A stretch of DNA of 64,000 nt, from NCBI GenBank assembly GCA_965113315.1, contig OZ220367.1. One strand, given 5' to 3'. Source of the DNA: Podarcis vaucheri (taxonomy: Eukaryota). Position numbers and translations under genes: made by a program. Shown here piece after piece: positions 45,502-54,852 of this stretch (its first letter is position 1; the number at the start of each line of letters is the position of its first letter). The notes under the pieces are model-generated. The model did no database searches. It was given only the letters and a program-made list of their open reading frames with translations, and was not told the DNA's origin.

Positions 45502-45782
45502 NNNNNNNNNNNNNNNNNNNNNNNNNNNNNNNNNNNNNNNNNNNNNNNNNNNNNNNNNNNNNNNNNNNNNNNNNNNNNNNNNNNNNNNNNNNNNNNNNNN
45601 NNNNNNNNNNNNNNNNNNNNNNNNNNNNNNNNNNNNNNNNNNNNNNNNNNNNNNNNNNNNNNNNNNNNNNNNNNNNNNNNNNNNNNNNNNNNNNNNNNNN
45701 NNNNNNNNNNNNNNNNNNNNNNNNNNNNNNNNNNNNNNNNNNNNNNNNNNNNNNNNNNNNNNNNNNNNNNNNNNNNNNNNNN
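45502..45782. other. Assembly gap (281 N)
   Basis: Run of N. Confidence 1.
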
Positions 45783-45829: not shown

Positions 45830-46780
45830 AGAGGCGCGTCTCTCCTTCTCTGGCCCCCCTTTCCCCCGCTCCTCTCGGGAGCGCCTCGGAGGCCCCCGGC
45901 CGCGTTGGTGCGAAATGCCGGGAGGCGTCTCCCCCCGCCAGGCAGGGAACGGAGGCCTGGGAGGAAGCGGGGCCTCCCGGAGGGGCCTCGCCGGGGAGAG
46001 CGGCCCACCCACCTTGAGCGTGGGGTACTCCTGCACCTTCAGAGTCATCGAGAGCTGAGCGGCCGACTCCTGCACCGCCATCTTGGACCGAGCACCAAAC
46101 GCCGCCGCCGCCGCCTCCGCCCGCCCGCGCTGCTCCTTCTCCTCACAGAATCCTGAGGGAGCCTTCGGTACCCCCTCGCGAACTGCACCCTGGGAGAGAA
46201 AGCGCTTCCGCCTCCCCCCCCCGCCGGCCTTCGGATGACAGACGAGTCCACCCCAAGGGCCCTCGCTCGCTTCCTTCCTTCCTTCCTTCCGCTCCCCCCC
46301 CTTTCCCCCCCCTCAAATGGTTCGTGCCATTAGCGCGACGGGCTGACGCAGGGAAGCAAGGCAGCCAATCAGAGCGCTCCTCTGACACCCGTTCTTCTCT
46401 TCTCTTGTCCGTCTCTCTCTGTTTGCGATGTTTTTCGCTTTCCGAGCAGGAATCTGTAAAAGCAGGTTGGGTTGGGGAGGAAGTGACGCGATGGGAGGGG
46501 CTTGACGAATCGAGGCGAGGCTTCGGGTTCGCCCTGATTGACACCTTCCGGCCGCCGCGGGCCGTCGGCCAATCCAAGCCGAGGGTGGGCGGGACTCGCT
46601 GGACGCGGAGTCTGAGGCGGCGCTTTCGAGTTCAGTTTGGCGGCGGCCGCTCAGCGCGAGGGAGCGAGCGAGGTGGCTGACCCGACGGTCTCCTTCGTCG
46701 AGCAGTGAGGACAGCGGGCCTGGTTTGTTTCACAGTTGTTTCTGCCGGTTGGAGCGACGGGAGTGTTTCTAAGCGTGTAC
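45830..46780. promoter_or_regulatory. MAEA CpG-island promoter (possibly bidirectional)
   Basis: Very high GC/CpG; YY1-type CAAGATGGCGG over the ATG; CCAAT boxes (about 46365, 46569); GGAAGTGACG ETS-CRE composite (46479-46488); GC box. Confidence 0.85.
46013..46081 (-). CDS. MAEA: MAEA coding exon 1 (E3 ubiquitin-protein transferase MAEA, CTLH complex)
   Basis: ATG at 46081; MAVQESAAQLSMTLKVQEYPTLK matches the vertebrate MAEA N-terminus; donor AAG|GTGGGT; 69 nt. Confidence 0.97.
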
Positions 46781-46932: not shown

Positions 46933-47755
46933 GAAGTCAAATGTTTTATACGGAGGTTTTTTTTAAAAAATATTTTATTAAAACCTTGTCATAGTACAAT
47001 AAGATGAAACAAATCTAAATGAAATGAAATGAAAACACAGTGAAAGAAGAAACAGCGAAGGGAAGAAAAGAAAAGGGAAAAAAGAGGAAAAATAAAAAGG
47101 ACTTCTGATTTTCAGTCTGTTGGTTACATAAATGAAATTGTTCCAAATACTCACTCTAGAATGATGCCCAACAGATCTACTTTCTGTTAGGCAATATTTG
47201 CCCAGTCTTCCAACCCAAATGACTCACATTAATTCATTTTTCTTTTTACACAAAAAAATCCAAAAGGGGGTTCTCTAATTATCGTTATTAATACATTTCA
47301 ACAGTAGTTTTTTCTGTAATCAAAATTAATTAATTTGTATACTGCCCTATACCTGTAGTTTTCAGCGTGGTTGCAACATAAAATCACAATATAAAAACAC
47401 AAAACACATAATATCAAGTCCACTGTGAGTGTATATTAAAATAAGATCCCATAATTCTATTATTATTTATTCATTAATTTGAATCCAGTGCCTTATCTTC
47501 AATTCCCATTTCCTGTTGCATTTGTTGTACTTTTCCGTCCTGTTTTTTTAAATCCCTTCCATTTATGTTTCTTCCATTTCCTATCCCCTAAAAAGTGCCA
47601 GAGGTTTGATAGCTTTTTCCTCTGAATTCACTCCAAGTCGTGCACAGAGTCCTTTTTCACTCAACTCTATCTCTGCCAGATCAGTATATCTCTTCCGCTC
47701 TCCATCCATGGTTTCTTTCCACCTCTGCAACACCACAACTCTCATTTCTCTAAGC

Positions 47756-50700
47756 CAGTGTTTTTCAACCGCTCTTACGCGGCACACTAGTGTGCCGCGA
47801 GATGTTGCCTGGTGTGCCGTGGGAGGGAGGCGGGCGAGTTGGGCGGCGAGAGGCGGGGCAGCGGTGGCGAGGAGAGGCCGCCCAGCGCGGGGCTCTCGCC
47901 GTCTGGCTGCCTGCGTGGCGCTGACGTCACGGGGCTGTAACGTGCCCCACATAGCGAGCTCCCTCCCACATCCCATCGCCGCTCTGCCGCACGCTAGCTC
48001 GTTTCGGCTGGCCTACTGGGCTGTCGCAGGCGGAAGGCCTGCGCATGCGCGAGGTTTTCGCGCCTTCGGGATTCCCTTCACGCCTTCCTCCTCCCGGGGC
48101 CTTGAGAGCGCGGGAAGCGGCAGCGCGAGACCGGCCGTTGAGCCTGGCAGGTATTGCGCTTGCCAAGGCAGTCATGCAGATCATCCTTTATTATCCTTTT
48201 TAAAAGTTGCATGTGGGATTGTGGCATTGTGCAAAATGCATGAATAAATCTTTCATGGAAATGGGCAGTGACACAAATCCGTAGTCATCCAGGAGGTTCT
48301 GTAAAGCAGGCAGCAGTTGGGCTTGTTTGGGCGGACAGTCTCTTCCCATACTATGAAAGAAAATGGATAGTCAGCACAAGGAAAGCCAAGGCCAGGTGAA
48401 ATAAGGATCACCTGGGAAATACAGAGAACTGGACTATCAGGAAATTATTGAAATCCTAATTACAAAGAGTTTGAACAGTGTCCCACATAACCTTTGTGGA
48501 GCTTTAAATAGATTTTATTTTATTTATTGCAATGCATTGCATTGCAAACCACTCTGTGGGGATTTCTTTATCCCGAAAGGCAGCCTAGATACTTTAATAA
48601 ATAATAAATCAATTCATTATAAATGAAATTGAATTTAGATTCACAGTATAAGCACAATTTAAATCAGACTCATGCCAGCTACATTACTGCCCTGGAGATG
48701 TTTGGGTTGAAAGGCAGAATACTAATTCAATTAACAACGCCAACAACCACCTTTTTACAGGCATATGTCAAGGGCTCAGCACCTCCTTTTAAGTATTTGA
48801 ATCCGTTACGTTTACATGGATATTTCCCCAGCTTCTAATAGCATTTGCTCTCTTCTCTCATAGGATTTTCATACGTTTCTGGTGCTCTGTTATAGATTAT
48901 TTTTAGAAACTGCTTGTATTTTTTTAAAAAAGCACAATATATACAACAATGTACAATTTAATAACACATAAATTAAACTAAGTCATTATTATATTGTAAA
49001 TTAATCTGAAATAATCTTAATTCCTCCAGCATCATGTCTCTGTATATTAAATTTAGGATCAATGTTGTATTCTAGATTTAAAATGATGATTCAGTACATA
49101 AATACAGAGGCAAAATTCAGAGCTTACTAGCAACCACCTTTTTAGGTTTTCTGTAAACTGGGGAAGACATCCATGTTGGAAGTTCAATTCCTTGCTTAGC
49201 CATGAAGCTCAATGGAAATTGCCTTGCTCTTGCCCTCTCTAATCCAGTGTTTTTCAACCGCTGTTCCGCGGCACACTAGGCCCTCGGGGACCTCGTGGCT
49301 TCCGCTTTTGCGTGTGCTGCCGTCACTCTTCCTGCCATTCCCATGTATAATTCGTGCCCGTAATACAGGCAGTAAAAACTGTTCTGTATAACGACTACCC
49401 CGCCTCTTCCCCCCCCATCTAAACCCATTTTTTTTTCCTTTGCAGAAATGAGCCGTTGCATTGAGCTCACACAGTATGCATGTTTTTGCCTGGCTGTGAT
49501 TGGTCCGGACTCCAGCCTGGACCTATCACAGTAGGACATCATCTTCCGACTTCCTTCCCGCCCGAGCACAGAGACCAGGACTCAGCGGGAGTCGGCACTG
49601 CAGAGAGGCCGGATACTGCAGTGATGGACAAGTTTTTGAAAAGAAAAGAACTGGACTCTGAACAAAATTTGGAGCCAGATGAGAGCCCAAGAATGAGTGG
49701 GGATGAAAAGAAAGCAAAGATGGTTAGCTCAAGCAAATTCTCGGGCACAAGGCAATATAGCGAAAGCTATATTTCATTTGGATTTACTTTCACGGGAGAT
49801 GCAAACCAACCAACTCCACTGTGCATGGTGTGTGGTGAAAAGCTAGCTAACAACAGTGCTATGGTCCCAAGCAAACTTAAACGTCATCTCCAAACGAAAC
49901 ACCCTTCGCTTCAAAACAAGAATGCGGACTATTTTGTTCGCCTGCGTGAAAACACGGAGAAACAGGCAACTTTCATGAGAAAAACCACAAAGGTAAATGA
50001 AAGAGCTCTTAAAGCTAGCTATCACGTTGCTGAACTTATAGCCAAGTCAAAAAAGTCGCACACTGTGGCAGAGACATTAATACTTCCCGCCTGCAAAGCT
50101 ATTGTAGAGGAGATGCTCGGACCTGAAGCAGCTAAGGAAATAGCCAAAGTCCCTCTCTCAGACAACACAATTTCCAGACGTATTAATGACATGTCTGCAG
50201 ACATTGAAAGTGTGGTTTTGGAAAAGATCCATATCAGTGAGAAATTTGCATTACAACTTGACGAGTCTACTGATATCAGTGGACATGCTCAACTCTTGGC
50301 CAATGTGCGTTTTGTTGATGGTGATGCAATTAGAGAAAACTTCTTTTTCTGCAAGGCATTGCCAGAAAAAACAACAGGAGAAGAAATTTTTCGGGTCACA
50401 TCAGAATACCTTGAACAAGGAGGACTTAAGTGGGAAAACTGCACAAGTGTCTGCACCGATGGAGCTGCAGCCATGGTCGGGCACACCAAAGGCTTTGTAA
50501 GCAGAGTGAAGGAAAGAAATCCAGATGTGATTGTTACGCATTGTTTTTTACACCGTGAGGCCCTCGTAGCCAAGACTTTACCAGCAGACCTAGTTCATGT
50601 GTTGGATGATGTTGTGCGCATGGTAAACTTTGTAAAGTCACGACCCGTGAAAAGTCGCATATTTGCAGCTTTGTGTGAGGAGATGGGAGCGAAGCATAAA

Positions 50701-51736
50701 ACCTTGCTGTTTCATACGGAGGTCCGGTGGTTATCGCGTGGCAAGGTCTTGGTTCGTGTGTATGAGCTGCGGGAGGAACTTAAAGTGTTTCTGACAAATG
50801 AGAGGACAGATTACGCAAAACTGCTTGCAAGTGATGAGTGGTGTGCAAGGCTGGCATACCTGGCAGATATATTTCATCATCTGAATGAACTGAACACACA
50901 AATGCAAGGCCGAAATGAAAACCTGCTTACAAGTACAGATAAAATAAATGGATTCCGTTCAAAGGTGCAACTCTGGCATCAACACGTGGAAAGTGGCAAT
51001 CTTGAAATGTTCACACTCACCAAGCAATGGCAAGGTGTTCACACTGCTGCACTGTGTGAGATAATAGTTAAACATTTAAAAACTCTCGAGGGGAAGTTGT
51101 CATTTTATTTCTCTTCAGTCTCCACTGAATGCCTTGACTGGGTTAGGGACCCTTATAGCTCAGCATCAGTTGGTGGAAAGGACATGACTTTACAGGAGCA
51201 GGAGGAACTAACTGAACTGAGACAAAATCGTGGTTTCAAGCTAAGATTTGCTGATCTACCTTTGGACAGTTTTTGGTTGGAAACTGCCAAGGAGTTCCCC
51301 CTTCTGGCAAACAAAGCTATTTTGACATTGCTCCCATTTTCCACTACATATCTCTGTGAGTTGAGCTTTTCAAGCATGATTGCTATAAAAACTAATTACA
51401 GAGAGAGACTGAGAGCTGTTGACGAAGAGCTACGTGTGTGTCTTTCTTCGATTCCAGCCAGAATATCAGCTTTGTGTTCAGCCAAACAGGCCCAGGTTGC
51501 GCACTGAATAAAGTATTTTATAATTTTTCATATTTCTGTTTACTTACTATTTCATAATAAAGTAATTATAAAATACTTTCTTTGTGTTTATTTGATTCCT
51601 ATTAAAGAGAATTACTTTATATATAGTCAATATAGGCACAGAGTTAATTTTTTAAACATTTTCTAATGGTGGTGTGCCTCGAGATTTTTTTCATGAAACA
51701 AGTGTGCCTTTGCCCAAAAAAGGTTGGGAAACACTG
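47756..51736 (+). mobile_element. Composite autonomous hAT (Buster/Charlie-like) DNA transposon, 3,981 bp
   Basis: Left TIR CAGTGTTTTTCAACC, right TIR GGTTGGGAAACACTG; 8-bp TSD CTCTAAGC at 47748-47755 and 51737-51744 with central TA; second left end at 49245; GTGTGCC subterminal repeats at both outer ends. Confidence 0.93.
49624..51507 (+). CDS. Intact hAT Buster-family transposase (ZBED5/ZBED8/SCAND3-like), about 627 aa (frame open from 49480, 675 aa)
   Basis: BED finger (CMVC...HLQTKH), catalytic D (LDESTD), D (CTDGA), CxxH (HCFLH), W (VRWLS), E (YLCELSFS); Kozak-like GTGATGG at 49624; AATAAA overlapping the stop. Confidence 0.93.
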
Positions 51737-52177
51737 CTCTAAGCATCTGTGTGAAGGACTTTTCGATTTCACCCACTGTTGCCTCCAACTCTACCATTTC
51801 ATGTTCCTGTTCTGGCAATCCTTTTTCCATATGGAGCTTTGAAATCTTTGTGTCCTCTTTTCACCTTCACCCAGACCTGGGAAATGGATCACAGCTTGTC
51901 TGCCTACTTGGCCAATGGCAGGTGGGCTGTGATCTCTGCCCCTGGCTTCACTCTGGTCCTCATCCGCCCCATGGGTTTACTTATGTAACATAGAGTTAAA
52001 GTCGTAGTGATTACTTTATTTTCCAAGTAAACACACAAAAGGCAAGTTATAACTGATCAGTGGTCAAGTTCGCTGACAGGGCTTAGCAAGCAAGTGTTGA
52101 CAAGTGAGTATGTCGTACATTGTCAGGAAGTCCAGCATGCATCAGCAGGAATATGTTGCGTGTAATGACTTGTTTAT

Positions 52178-52516
52178 GGGACACGGGTGGCGCTGTGGAT
52201 TAAACCACAGAGCCTAAGGCTTGCCGATCAGAAGGTCGGCAGTTCGAATTCCCACCACGGGGTGAGCTCCCATTGCTCGGTCCCTGCTTCTGCCAACCTA
52301 GCAGTTCGAAAGCACGAAGTGCAAGTAGATAAATAAGTACCGCTCTGGCGGGAAGGTAAACGGCGTTTCCGTGCGCTGTTCTGGTTCACCAGAAGGGGCT
52401 TAGTTATGCTGGCCACTTGACCAGGAAGCTGTATGCTGGCTCCCTCGGCCCATAGAGCAAGATGAGCGCCAGAGTCAGCCACGACTGGACCTAATGGTCA
52501 GGGGTCCCTTTACCTT
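52178..52516 (+). mobile_element. Sauria SINE
   Basis: Full head and tail; TSD TAATGACTTGTTTA. Confidence 0.9.
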
Positions 52517-54852
52517 TAATGACTTGTTTACAATATAATACTATAAATAGGCAACACACATGAAATCTAATTTAGATTGTTTCTGAATTGTGTGACAAGC
52601 AGTTAACAGTAGTGCAAGTGCAATAATTTTTTTAAAAAAAATCATATTTGATACCTTCTATCTTTACGGATTACAGATCACATACAAATTGTATTGTTGT
52701 TGTTTCAATAAAATAGCAATTTACGCTTGAGTGTTTTTATACATTTTCTTACACATCTACTATGGTATCCTTCCCCCAAGACACATCCTAACTATGGAAA
52801 GCTCTGCAAAACAAAATCTGTTACAGTGTGGTCCCATCTCATGTGAGGGTTCTGCCCCAGAAGCAGTACGTACGTATTTGCAAAACCACACATAGCCAAA
52901 AACTGCTGGCTCTCAAGGGAGGGAACCACGACACAGAGGCCCTCCCCATGTCTCCACTTCCCTCCTGCATGCACAGTAGCAGCATTGAGAGGACCATAGC
53001 AGATTTATTTTCCTCTTTTCTGAGTTGCCACAGCAAGGAGAAGAGAGCAGGGAGTTGCAACCAGCCTCCTACAGCTGCGAGATGAGCAGGGAAGCAGCGC
53101 AAGGCAGACAGAGGGGAAAAGAAATCTGGCTCCCTTGGCTGCAGTAAGGAGAAGAGAAGCGTGTAGAAGCTACAGCTCCACTGCAGATCCATGGTGTCGA
53201 GCTCAGTGCAAAGAAAAGAATACAAGTTATGGGGCCTCAAACATCCAGATAACTAATCAGGTCTGTGTGCACACTGGCAAGGCTATCCAGATAACGGGCA
53301 GTAGGGGCACCACCTGGCTAAACCCTCACCACCCATTCAAGGAAAGTACTAAAGCCCTTGAAGGCTGAACAGGAGGCAGAGCAGCTCATGAGCATAGCTC
53401 TCAACAGTATTGACCTTGAAACGGGACATCCAACAGGTTCCTGGCTCGTGGGTGCACAGGCAGCACCTGAGAGGCTGGCTTGATGTCACCTTTTGCCAGC
53501 AGCACACCCCTTCTGAACCGCACAACCCCCACTGCCTCCTCAAAGGGTATGTATTTCACAGAGACCATTTCCTGTGCAACCCCGTCCCCTTAGGAAATGA
53601 AACAATATGAATGAGGTGTATTCCTCAGGCAGGAGGGAGGAAAAGGGTCCAGAGATCCTCTCCTATTAAGGTAAGGACCCTGGCTTTGGTCCCTTATACA
53701 TGGGGCACCAAGAGGGCACCAAACACAGCCCTGCTTCAGTAGTGGGAACAACATTCCCTAGGCAGTCTCGATACATCCACATGACCATGCACTGTCTATC
53801 ACATTTGAATAATTTAGTAATATTTATTTCTGCTTTCAGTAAGCAAAAGCAGCTGCATATTAACCGCATCTGTATGAATACAGAGACTGAAAAGCATCGA
53901 TGACAAATGCAAATATTCAAACATTTCCAAACTGGAGTTCCAGGCATGCAAGTTGCAATGGCGTGTGGAAATAATATAATAACAATGAAATGATTTTCTT
54001 GATAGCTTATTTGTTCTAATAATGTGGTAAGACATTGAATAGATGGCGCTCTAATAGGAAGATTAGGAGTTTATAATTAGGCTGTGCGTTCTCATGTTGC
54101 TCAAGATAGGATAGTTACTTCATATTCAGTTAAAATGTACTAATAGCCTACTTCTGGAGAAAATATTGCCTTGTTTAGCATATCTAGGACATTATTTTGA
54201 TTCCCCAACATAAACATAGTGGTTGTTTTAAAAAGAGCAGCAGGCTGTTTATACTGGCCGAATCTGACAATATAATTGATGTTTCACATTTTGGGCTCAA
54301 TAAATCATCTTCAAAATGTTGCCGGTAAGATTGGGAAAATGAGAAACAGAACCTGAAATTGATAGGTTTATCTATCTCTCCCTGTGCCATCCCCAGGTTC
54401 CTGACTGGGCACAATTCAAGGTTTTCTGCCCTTTTGGCAATGTGCTAGATTCCTTGGCTAAGGAGCAGAACCACTTGCTGTGCTAAGGTGATACCAACCT
54501 CTAAGTTTTGATTACTTACATCACCTGCCTTTCTGTGCCTTCCATTAACTGTGTATTGCCTGCTGTGCCTTAGATTAGCAATTTCCATATGCAGCCCACC
54601 AATCTCAACATTAAAGGCTTTGGAAAGAATCCACCTTTGAGTTCTTGTTCTTTTGCAACTGGCAGCCAGGACTTTAACTCAGAACTTGAGATCCTGGCCA
54701 CGCGTGGACCTCCCCCCACTTTCTCAAACAAGCCTGGAGTTTTTTATCCTGATTTTGGGGAGCGGGGAGTGCTTGACCAAATAACAACTACGAGCTGGTT
54801 CTTCCTCTAATATCCAGCAGATGGTGCTGGCATAACATAACTCAGGTGATTT

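Follow-up and report, generated by a model that had tools for sequence, protein, structure and literature searches.

A composite element of 3,981 bp (3.98 kb) lies on the plus strand at positions 47756-51736 of a 64,000-nt stretch of Podarcis vaucheri DNA (contig OZ220367.1), which was analysed as a whole and is referred to as the window. As judged from its sequence, it is a real chimeric element, probably a Buster (hAT) transposon, that entered this site in one piece and generated an 8-bp target site duplication (TSD). It has two like-oriented left ends and one right end, with the TSD at the outermost pair. The outer left end (47756-47790) carries the 15-nt terminal inverted repeat (TIR) CAGTGTTTTTCAACC and runs on into a perfect 20-nt palindrome, GCGGCACACTAGTGTGCCGC (47779-47798), whose first half contributes GGCACAC (47781-47787). 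The inner left end (49245-49279, plus strand) is identical to the outer copy at 33 of 35 nt, stops at the palindrome centre and, directly past TAG, gives way to unrelated sequence. A repeat search of the window extends this likeness to a 44-nt direct repeat (47747-47790 vs. 49236-49279, 41/44 or 93% identical) composed of a T, the 8-mer CTCTAAGC or CTCTAATC, and left-end nucleotides 1-35. On the plus strand, CAGTGTTTTTCAACC is found at 47756 and 49245 only, and its single inverted partner is the right TIR CAGTGTTTCCCAACC at 51722-51736 (13/15, two mismatches). The perfect 8-bp TSD CTCTAAGC occupies 47748-47755 and 51737-51744, and CTCTAATC (49237-49244) directly precedes the inner left end. 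GTGTGCC occurs on the plus strand at 47790 and 47812 on the left and at 51672 and 51702 on the right; the sole copy in the inner left end is minus-oriented (49270).

The first-pass annotation had described the same architecture, and repeat search and alignment agree with it on the doubled left end, the single right end, the perfect TSD at the outer left and right ends, the similar target-like 8-mer ahead of the inner end, the break halfway through the palindrome, and the lack of outer-type GTGTGCC repeats at the inner end. A self-BLAST of eight segments of the element against the 64-kb window returned no further copy of any part. An independent transposon at 47756-49236, between CTCTAAGC and CTCTAATC, was considered and rejected because there is no right end at 49236. 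In read data from related lizards, the outer left end has very high depth in three runs, and essentially all other copies carry C instead of A at 47777. The end repeats are not a chance likeness, as the 35-nt end is part of a repeat that reaches ~10^4 copy-equivalents in related genomes.

The element interrupts a minus-strand ORF, the downstream half of which lies in the left flank (47584-47755, the last 8 nt being CTCTAAGC) and the upstream half of which follows the right TSD (flank 51737-51860). This ORF is a moderately repeated, TE-like sequence, and a Pfam search with the two flank pieces gave no match; the site is upstream of MAEA. In protein searches with each flank piece separately, residues 6-55 of the left flank matched residues 98-147 of one protein (P0123), and the right-flank piece matched residues 49-86 of P0123 and residues 9-44 of a second protein (P0122). 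Both flanks are colinear within one chain in P0122 and P0123, which are thus empty sites, all of them paralogous and none orthologous. Since both flanks occur in single paralogous proteins, the pre-insertion site held none of 47756-51736; the whole segment is inserted DNA and, in agreement with the perfect TSD, represents one insertion relative to the ancestral sequence. Contigs from runs X3 and X7 span the right-end/flank junction.

Both CTCTAAGC and CTCTAATC fit nnnTAnnn, the TSD consensus of Buster elements (PMC3499496), and TCTCTAAGC and TCTCTAATC match at 8 of 9 positions. CTCNAARC borders one unrelated copy (P0126), and xxYTNGAY borders two more, which are too few for a TSD logo. These flanks indicate that target preference can explain the similar inner 8-mer, and the near-identity is probably due to such a preference.

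Components of the composite

Positions 47756-48175 are the left arm and cargo of an abundant non-autonomous Buster family, present at roughly 10^3-10^4 copies in related lizards and outnumbering autonomous copies by ~1000 to 1 (both from read depth). The main mini-element keeps 47756-47937, which a 47937->51664 joint fuses to 51664-51736 in very abundant mini-elements; longer forms extend up to 48175, and 47938-48175 is present at hundreds to thousands of copy-equivalents by the same measure. Past the 35-nt end, a CpG-island-like block (47791-48175, plus strand; GC 0.70, CpG o/e 0.96) contains sequence motifs for CRE (47922) and an NRF1-like site (48041), and a possible splice donor, CAG/GT, at 48150/48151. 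Other copies of this block depart from the window sequence exactly at 48175, which appears as a loose end in three runs, and P0121 runs past this point into the same alternative sequence (protein search). An imperfect repeat, GCAGTCAT/GCAGATCAT, lies at the 48175/48176 junction as microhomology. The left arm is thus cut inside its own cargo and lacks the right end of its mini-element. When a spurious ORF running through the flank, left end, CpG block and filler was used as a query, two other copies only, P0121 and P0126, were found. A fresh capture of a local promoter was rejected as the source of the block, which is high-copy. Host promoter or first-exon fragments are carried by many members of the mini-element family.

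The extra DNA described by the first-pass annotation is indeed foreign to the site, but it has more than one source: the abundant mini-element arm and cargo, cut at 48175, make up the initial 420 bp, and these are followed by an AT-rich, CpG-poor, low-copy filler (48176-49135, plus strand; CpG o/e 0.21 over 48176-49244). With contig depth as a rough measure of copy number only, the filler stands at ~1x in run X1 and ~2x in run X7 (48512/48842-49165 for these two runs) and at ~8x in run X3 (48512-49244), and depth declines along it from 48186 to 49090. An X1 contig with 48193-48525 has 41 unaligned letters upstream, and the 5' part of the filler may be an unrelated repeat. A 48870->51574 joint, at ~2.7x in X7 and also present in a single RNA read, one side of which measures 50 nt, suggests deletion derivatives that retain the filler and the right arm. 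Overall, the read data hint that parts of the filler are present in more than one copy. Low sense-strand RNA covers 48186-48909.

From 49136 rightward, the sequence is common to autonomous copies that number ~8 per genome according to two runs. Its first 109 nt (49136-49244, plus strand), which end with CTCTAATC, are also found upstream of the inner left end in ~9 copy-equivalents in one run; hence, the inner left end and CTCTAATC are not particular to this locus. An X1 contig (49136-49416) reaches a depth of 88, against ~10 in the single-copy flanks. Contigs of both X1 and X7 stop at 49165, and 49244 is the boundary between two listed contigs of X3. A joint in X7 places the TIR-like AGTGTTTTTCA just before 49136 in other autonomous copies, so that in them the inner left end lies inside the element. 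Autonomous copies of the common form seem to start near 49121-49135, where a third left end may have left CAACC (49131-49135) as a remnant; the pattern of this putative end had no match in bacterial and archaeal genome contigs.

Transposase and its expression

The autonomous part carries a plus-strand transposase gene, with a 5' UTR (49280-49623) that includes a strong acceptor-like polypyrimidine tract and CAG ending at 49445, an intact Buster/ZBED5-like ORF (49624-51507, 627 aa plus stop), and a 3' UTR with the right end (51508-51736; AATAAA at 51507 and 51556, TIR at 51722-51736). The last 73 nt (51664-51736) are the right arm common to mini-elements and have very high depth; the transposase stands at 8-20x in X1/X7 and ~4-5x in X3. 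In Pfam, the protein matches zf-BED (E=0.016) and zf-C2H2_12 (E=9e-6), each below the curated cut-off, and Dimer_Tnp_hAT is matched only in a 58%-identical relative (P0035). C67, C70, H88 and H93 are invariant in the transposase alignment, and the candidate acidic residues D213/D217, D279 and E579 fall in invariant columns. A private one-codon insertion at ~49849-49851 adds a residue to the BED-finger loop of the window copy; these 3 nt are absent from other copies in the read data. Close homologues occur in Podarcis, Zootoca, Thamnophis, Rana and Xenopus, and the named close matches are all 'ZBED5-like' or 'SCAN domain-containing protein 3-like', labels from a protein search that may point to placement with the Buster-derived proteins ZBED5 and SCAND3 as opposed to the Ac or Tip clades. 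A PDB search by sequence found no relative of the transposase, and viral contigs gave no match by protein scan or left-end pattern. Metagenome contigs yielded an internally deleted, fish-like copy without a 5' end (L001) and one distant relative, neither of which bears on the left end.

The transposase family is transcribed in sense in a related species. RNA depth there is ~1-2 in 49272-49452, reaches 22 reads at 49456 and is ~23-44 per bin over 49453-51443, and sense coverage of the transposase begins near 49280-49623. None of the RNA reads has the window's allele at the diagnostic sites 49456, 49629 and 49692; every one shows the alternative.

Possible histories of the composite

We infer the following order of events. 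An autonomous copy, corresponding to the right 2.6 kb (49136-51736), would have resided at another locus with low-copy DNA as its upstream flank, and its own left end would have been poor or damaged. A template switch or end bypass, helped by the microhomology at 48175/6, would have set the full left arm of a mini-element upstream; the transposase would then have paired this outer left end with the right end of the autonomous copy, and everything between would have moved upstream of MAEA. The truncated arm, the microhomology and the absence of a right end of its own make template switching or end bypass likelier than two neighbouring complete elements. We place the probability that the composite moved as one unit to its present site at about 0.5. 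Such movement is consistent with the full palindrome and right-end-type GTGTGCC at the outer end as opposed to the 35 nt at the inner end; a Buster element assayed in cells needs a left end of at least 135 bp, and ends of 24-64 bp are nearly dead (PMC12637253). The first-pass proposal, that a crippled left end recruited an intact one upstream and the unit moved, thus agrees with the single insertion and with ~1 kb of host-like DNA between the left ends; the movement of the unit is probable. Its Pack-type label is not retained, since an intact transposase is encoded and no parental gene was found for 47791-48175 or 48176-49135. Several observations run against unit movement: in X3 the filler (~8x) is commoner than the transposase (~4-5x) and contigs break at 49244, which is not predicted; in X1 the filler is at only ~1x; the truncated upstream arm fits repair synthesis equally well; and the likeness of TCTCTAAGC and TCTCTAATC would follow naturally from in-situ duplication.

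A possible, less probable history is that a mini-element inserted here and made the TSD, and that a later internal break was repaired from an autonomous copy, so that the composite itself never moved. Synthesis primed by the right arm would have proceeded through the autonomous copy and ~1 kb of its upstream flank, with a microhomology switch back at 48175. Mini-elements, at ~1000:1 over autonomous copies, would be the likelier first insertion, the shared right arm (51664-51736) could prime repair, and the left arm is cut within cargo at an imperfect repeat; moreover, ~2x filler in X7 is what would be expected for a donor plus this locus, and transposition-independent gap filling is the main proposed origin of animal Pack-TIRs (PMC8277862). 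However, the ~8x filler in X3, the depth gradient along it and the ~2.7x 48870->51574 derivative suggest that filler-bearing units multiplied. It is distinctly unlikely that the 3,981 bp are simply a standard autonomous element, with a promoter and a non-coding exon 1 at 47800-48150, a 1.3-kb 5'-UTR intron at 48151-49445 and a nested mini-element remnant as the inner end. The donor-like CAG/GT at 48150/1, the strong polypyrimidine tract and CAG acceptor at 49445, the promoter motifs in the CpG block, the low sense RNA over 48186-48909 and the rise of related-species RNA from ~1 read at 49408 to 22 at 49456 would all suit such a gene. Nonetheless, other CpG-block copies diverge at 48175 and other autonomous copies at 49135, the putative intron is low-copy as opposed to 8-20x for the transposase in X1/X7, a 48150->49446 joint is absent among the RNA joints listed, the RNA reads all carry the other allele at the three diagnostic sites, and a typical Buster is 2.5-3.0 kb with a single ORF (PMC12637253). 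An assembly artefact, i.e., two loci collapsed or mis-joined at the 35-nt left-end repeat, appears very improbable: the join would fall in a high-copy repeat and no listed contig covers the whole stretch or the 47755/6 or 48175/6 junctions, yet contigs from independent runs cover 48512-49165, 48512-49244, 49136-49416 (and with it the inner end) and the junction of right end and flank, and a chance mis-join would not yield a perfect TSD with colinear flanks.

Returning to movement as a unit, an unlikely extension is that an expressed autonomous Buster of wall lizards swapped a weak left end for an arm of the mini-element family that it mobilises, with a CpG promoter, a non-coding exon 1 and a donor joined to the 49445 acceptor, and is still mobile.

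Relation to known systems and biological meaning

The element resembles TcBuster and AnBuster in its 8-bp nnnTAnnn TSD, short TIR starting with CAG and single ORF of ~600-680 aa, and its putative BED finger and candidate acidic motifs may be further likenesses; its 15-nt TIR is within the 14-16 bp known for Busters (PMC12637253), the activity of which requires sub-terminal sequence past the TIR (PMC3499496, PMC12637253). However, those elements are 2.5-3.0 kb long with one left end, whereas the lizard copy measures 3.98 kb, has two left-end sequences, or perhaps three, and includes ~1.4 kb of extra DNA. Metazoan Pack-TIRs are likewise hAT-dominated TIR elements with foreign, often GC-rich DNA and junction microhomology (PMC8277862), and Tan et al. 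(2021, PMC8277862), who put forward models of gap filling, FoSTeST and end bypass, explain multicopy forms by template switching followed by transposition. Unlike the lizard element, with its complete transposase and a left arm from a family of thousands of copies, Pack-TIRs are non-autonomous and mostly single-copy. In maize, hAT macrotransposons and compound Ds elements are known, and compound Ds-l4 elements trap extraneous sequence between their termini (PMC3260210). The proposed lizard history resembles Ac/Ds, where two elements in direct orientation each contribute one end, a 5' end and a 3' end respectively, and the intervening DNA moves with an outer 8-bp TSD. The lizard case differs in that it concerns a vertebrate and the Buster clade, its upstream partner is a truncated left arm without a right end, and its unit movement is deduced from sequence and not from genetics.

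To our knowledge, such composites have rarely been documented in vertebrates, and few active cut-and-paste transposons occur in amniotes. Movement of the composite as a unit, if it took place, would be a vertebrate instance of end bypass or macrotransposition, a process that moves ordinary DNA and can set new promoters beside genes. If the promoter-swap reading is true, cargo capture would have given the transposase a housekeeping-type promoter. At this locus, an intact transposase gene is physically joined to arms of a mini-element family with ~10^4 copies. The encoded transposase is also a candidate for the enzyme behind the elements of this genome that carry gene fragments.

Structure of the composite and its insertion site

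The features from which the first-pass annotation proposed a composite Buster hAT transposon (47756-51736), with two nested left ends and moved as one, were all found where it had placed them. A repeat search over 47000-52500 returned a sole long direct repeat, 47747-47790 against 49236-49279 (41/44 identical), in which a T is followed by CTCTAAGC or CTCTAATC as the 8-mer and then by 35 nt from the start of the left end, and within those 35 nt the outer and inner copies share 33 positions, as had been claimed for the doubled end. The 15-nt TIR occurs on the plus strand only at 47756 and 49245, and its lone inverted partner, with two mismatches, lies at 51722-51736, so that the right end is indeed single. 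The TSD, CTCTAAGC, stands beside both the outer left end and the right end, i.e., it belongs to the outermost pair. The outer left end leads into a perfect palindrome, GCGGCACACTAGTGTGCCGC (47779-47798), and, like the right end, carries two plus-strand GTGTGCC repeats; the inner one, as also proposed, halts after TAG, and GTGTGCC is present there as a minus-oriented copy only.

Once 47756-51736 and one TSD copy are removed, the flanks join into a 96-codon minus-strand open frame, and no such frame results when the inner element alone is taken out. The joined ORF was made in silico, and the database searches used the two flank pieces separately. When the left-flank piece was used as query in a full HMMER search, two paralogous proteins were returned, P0122 and P0123; residues 49-86 of P0123 match the right-flank piece and residues 98-147 the left-flank piece, and P0122 has the same arrangement. 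Because both proteins match both flanks, the flanks are adjacent stretches of a single old repeat, and the original site was without any of the 3,981 bp. These paralogous empty sites remove the scenario, raised in the first-pass annotation, of an empty site that retains 47756-49244 and received only the inner element. The interrupted repeat (47584-47755 and 51745-51860, minus strand), with its coiled-coil-like ORF, is present in roughly 10-25 copy-equivalents, and no Pfam domain was matched in this ORF. Contigs from two DNA read runs of related lizards span the junction of right end and flank (X3, 8/494 mismatches; X7, 0/306), and the insertion is thus common to at least two lineages. That the layout reflects mis-assembly is highly improbable.

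The composite lies approx. 1.7 kb upstream of, and divergent from, MAEA exon 1 (46010-46081, minus strand), which has a CpG island; an N run (45502-45782) is located just within the first MAEA intron. On the other side, a tRNA-related squamate SINE (52178-52517, flanked by a TAATGACTTGTTTA duplication), which we take to be Sauria-type, is by far the commonest sequence, its depth reaching millions in every run; ARAGORN called no tRNA within it.

Copy number and origin of the parts

For three DNA runs of related lizards (X1, X3 and X7), contigs were aligned to 47100-52500 together with raw RNA reads from one of the lizards, and the best-supported alignments are considered here. Copy-equivalents are contig depth divided by single-copy flank depth in the same run (~10 in X1, ~9 in X3, ~100 in X7) and are rough, as depth does not equal copy number. 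Both 47756-47937 and 51664-51736 reach ~10^4 copy-equivalents, and a direct joint, 47937->51664, is found in many contigs and ~70 RNA reads; these segments represent the two arms of an abundant mini-element. Its ~260-bp size class (47937/51664) has thousands of copies and is also seen in RNA, and a ~96-bp class (64 + 9 + 23 nt; 47819/51714) amounts to ~70 copy-equivalents in X1. The adjoining 47938-48175 has hundreds to thousands of copies. In all three runs, a loose end past 48175 reads TTGGGAAATGAAAACTTGC..., and P0121, a Logan ORF from another copy, translates exactly this continuation; therefore, 47756-48175 is a left arm, truncated and with CpG-rich cargo (GC 0.70, CpG o/e 0.96, CRE and NRF1-like motifs, a CAG|GT site). 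Its high copy number rules out unique host DNA. An imperfect repeat, GCAGTCAT before and GCAGATCAT after, marks the 48175 breakpoint.

The filler (48176-49135) is rich in AT and poor in CpG (o/e 0.21 over 48176-49244). Contigs over 48512/48842-49165 stand at ~1x in X1 and ~2x in X7, a contig over 48512-49244 at ~8x in X3, and contigs inside 48193-48525 are commoner (3-18x). At 48511, contigs of X3 and X7 show a 10-nt ATTTTATTTT insertion polymorphism. An X1 contig running through the inner left end (49136-49416) reaches ~9x. The filler contigs of X1 and X7 both stop at 49165, and thus copies diverge at 49135; in one X7 joint, AGTGTTTTTCA immediately precedes 49136. From this joint, whose left piece ends, unaccounted for, at 49265, and the two contig ends, we infer that the TIR of a common autonomous form (~8 copies) would start ~15 nt upstream of 49136. 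The inner left end would then be an internal repeat of that form, and only CAACC of the putative third left end would remain in the window. The X3 contigs listed break at 49244, where one stops and the next starts, not at 49135; in this run, filler and inner end each seem to be bordered by other sequence, as would be the case where a true insertion begins.

The transposase and its transcripts

The transposase ORF (49624-51507) is open over 627 aa; its product shares 97% identity with a Logan protein and 95% with Podarcis muralis A0A670JTK9. At 77-94% identity it is matched by proteins, bearing the names ZBED5-like or SCAND3-like, of frogs, teleosts, a snake, a tunicate (Styela) and a spider (Stegodyphus), and relatives in this range also occur in a salamander. 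A distribution so patchy, at such high identity, is what horizontal transfer of a transposon typically leaves. When 11 sequences are aligned, all invariant columns are preserved in the window copy, among them the C..C/H..H finger residues and the motifs LDESTD, CTDGA and YLCE. An Asn private to this copy (3 nt, 49849-49851) lies in the BED zinc-finger loop; it is missing in the 10 aligned relatives and in the majority of other genomic copies and RNA reads, and might affect DNA binding. Pfam matches are limited to BED and DUF4371, both sub-threshold, and a sequence search found no close solved structure. Assignment to Buster is based on the source names, the nnnTAnnn TSD (the Buster consensus, PMC3499496) and the short TIR typical of these elements (PMC12637253). 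A metagenome contig (MDSQ01038547.1, 1-830) contains an internally deleted relative, 89% identical to the ORF over its last 530 nt and with a recognisable right end, GGTTGAAAAACACTA; it is probably fish DNA within an environmental sample.

A stranded RNA library, made from a related species, gives ~23-44 sense reads per bin from ~49453 to 51443, with a drop past the AATAAA signals. Coverage rises from ~0-1 (49408) to 22 reads (49456) beside an acceptor-like site at 49445, a position at which a 5'-UTR intron could end if promoter, exon and intron formed an ordinary family architecture. As an ordinary family architecture this is unlikely, since the 48175 and 49135 breakpoints contradict it; no spliced joint 48150->49446 occurs among the RNA alignments listed, and all RNA reads at diagnostic sites carry alleles differing from those of the window.

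Formation of the composite and related systems

With a probability of about one half, the composite is a chimera made by end bypass or template switching that then transposed as a unit. By either route, a mini-element arm would have been joined to an autonomous copy and that copy's upstream flank, and the chimera would have moved via the outer left end and its own right end. Unit transposition is favoured because a tested Buster element required a left end of at least 135 bp (PMC12637253), because two of the runs contain the filler at above single copy (depth declining from 48186 to 49090), and because a 48870->51574 joint, found at ~2.7x in X7 and in a single RNA read that has 50 nt on one side, is what deletion derivatives would show if the composite were mobile. 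The main alternative, less probable, is that a mini-element landed here first and its interior was later swapped by repair synthesis from an autonomous copy and its flank, the same process as the transposition-independent gap filling described in PMC8277862.

The 8/9 match between the two similar 8-mers has a chance expectation of ~10^-3 by our estimate, which assumes independent 8-mers with the TA core alone fixed. In translated copies, the P0126 right end is followed by C-TCN-AAR-C, and Leu-Asp codons (xxYTNGAY) precede two left ends (P0121 and P0126). These three recovered junctions, too few for a logo, suggest a strong CTCTAGAG-like target preference, and with it the two 8-mers may plausibly have arisen independently. 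Nor is the internal 8-mer locus-specific, as it also lies inside the ~9x X1 contig.

Three known systems come closest: maize Ac/Ds macrotransposons and compound Ds elements (PMC3260210), metazoan Pack-TIRs with their FoSTeST and end-bypass models (PMC8277862), and standard Buster elements of 2.5-3.0 kb (PMC12637253). Among the papers searched, the one that mentions both macrotransposons and vertebrates concerns Teratorn. The inclusion of an intact transposase gene in the composite is particular to this locus.
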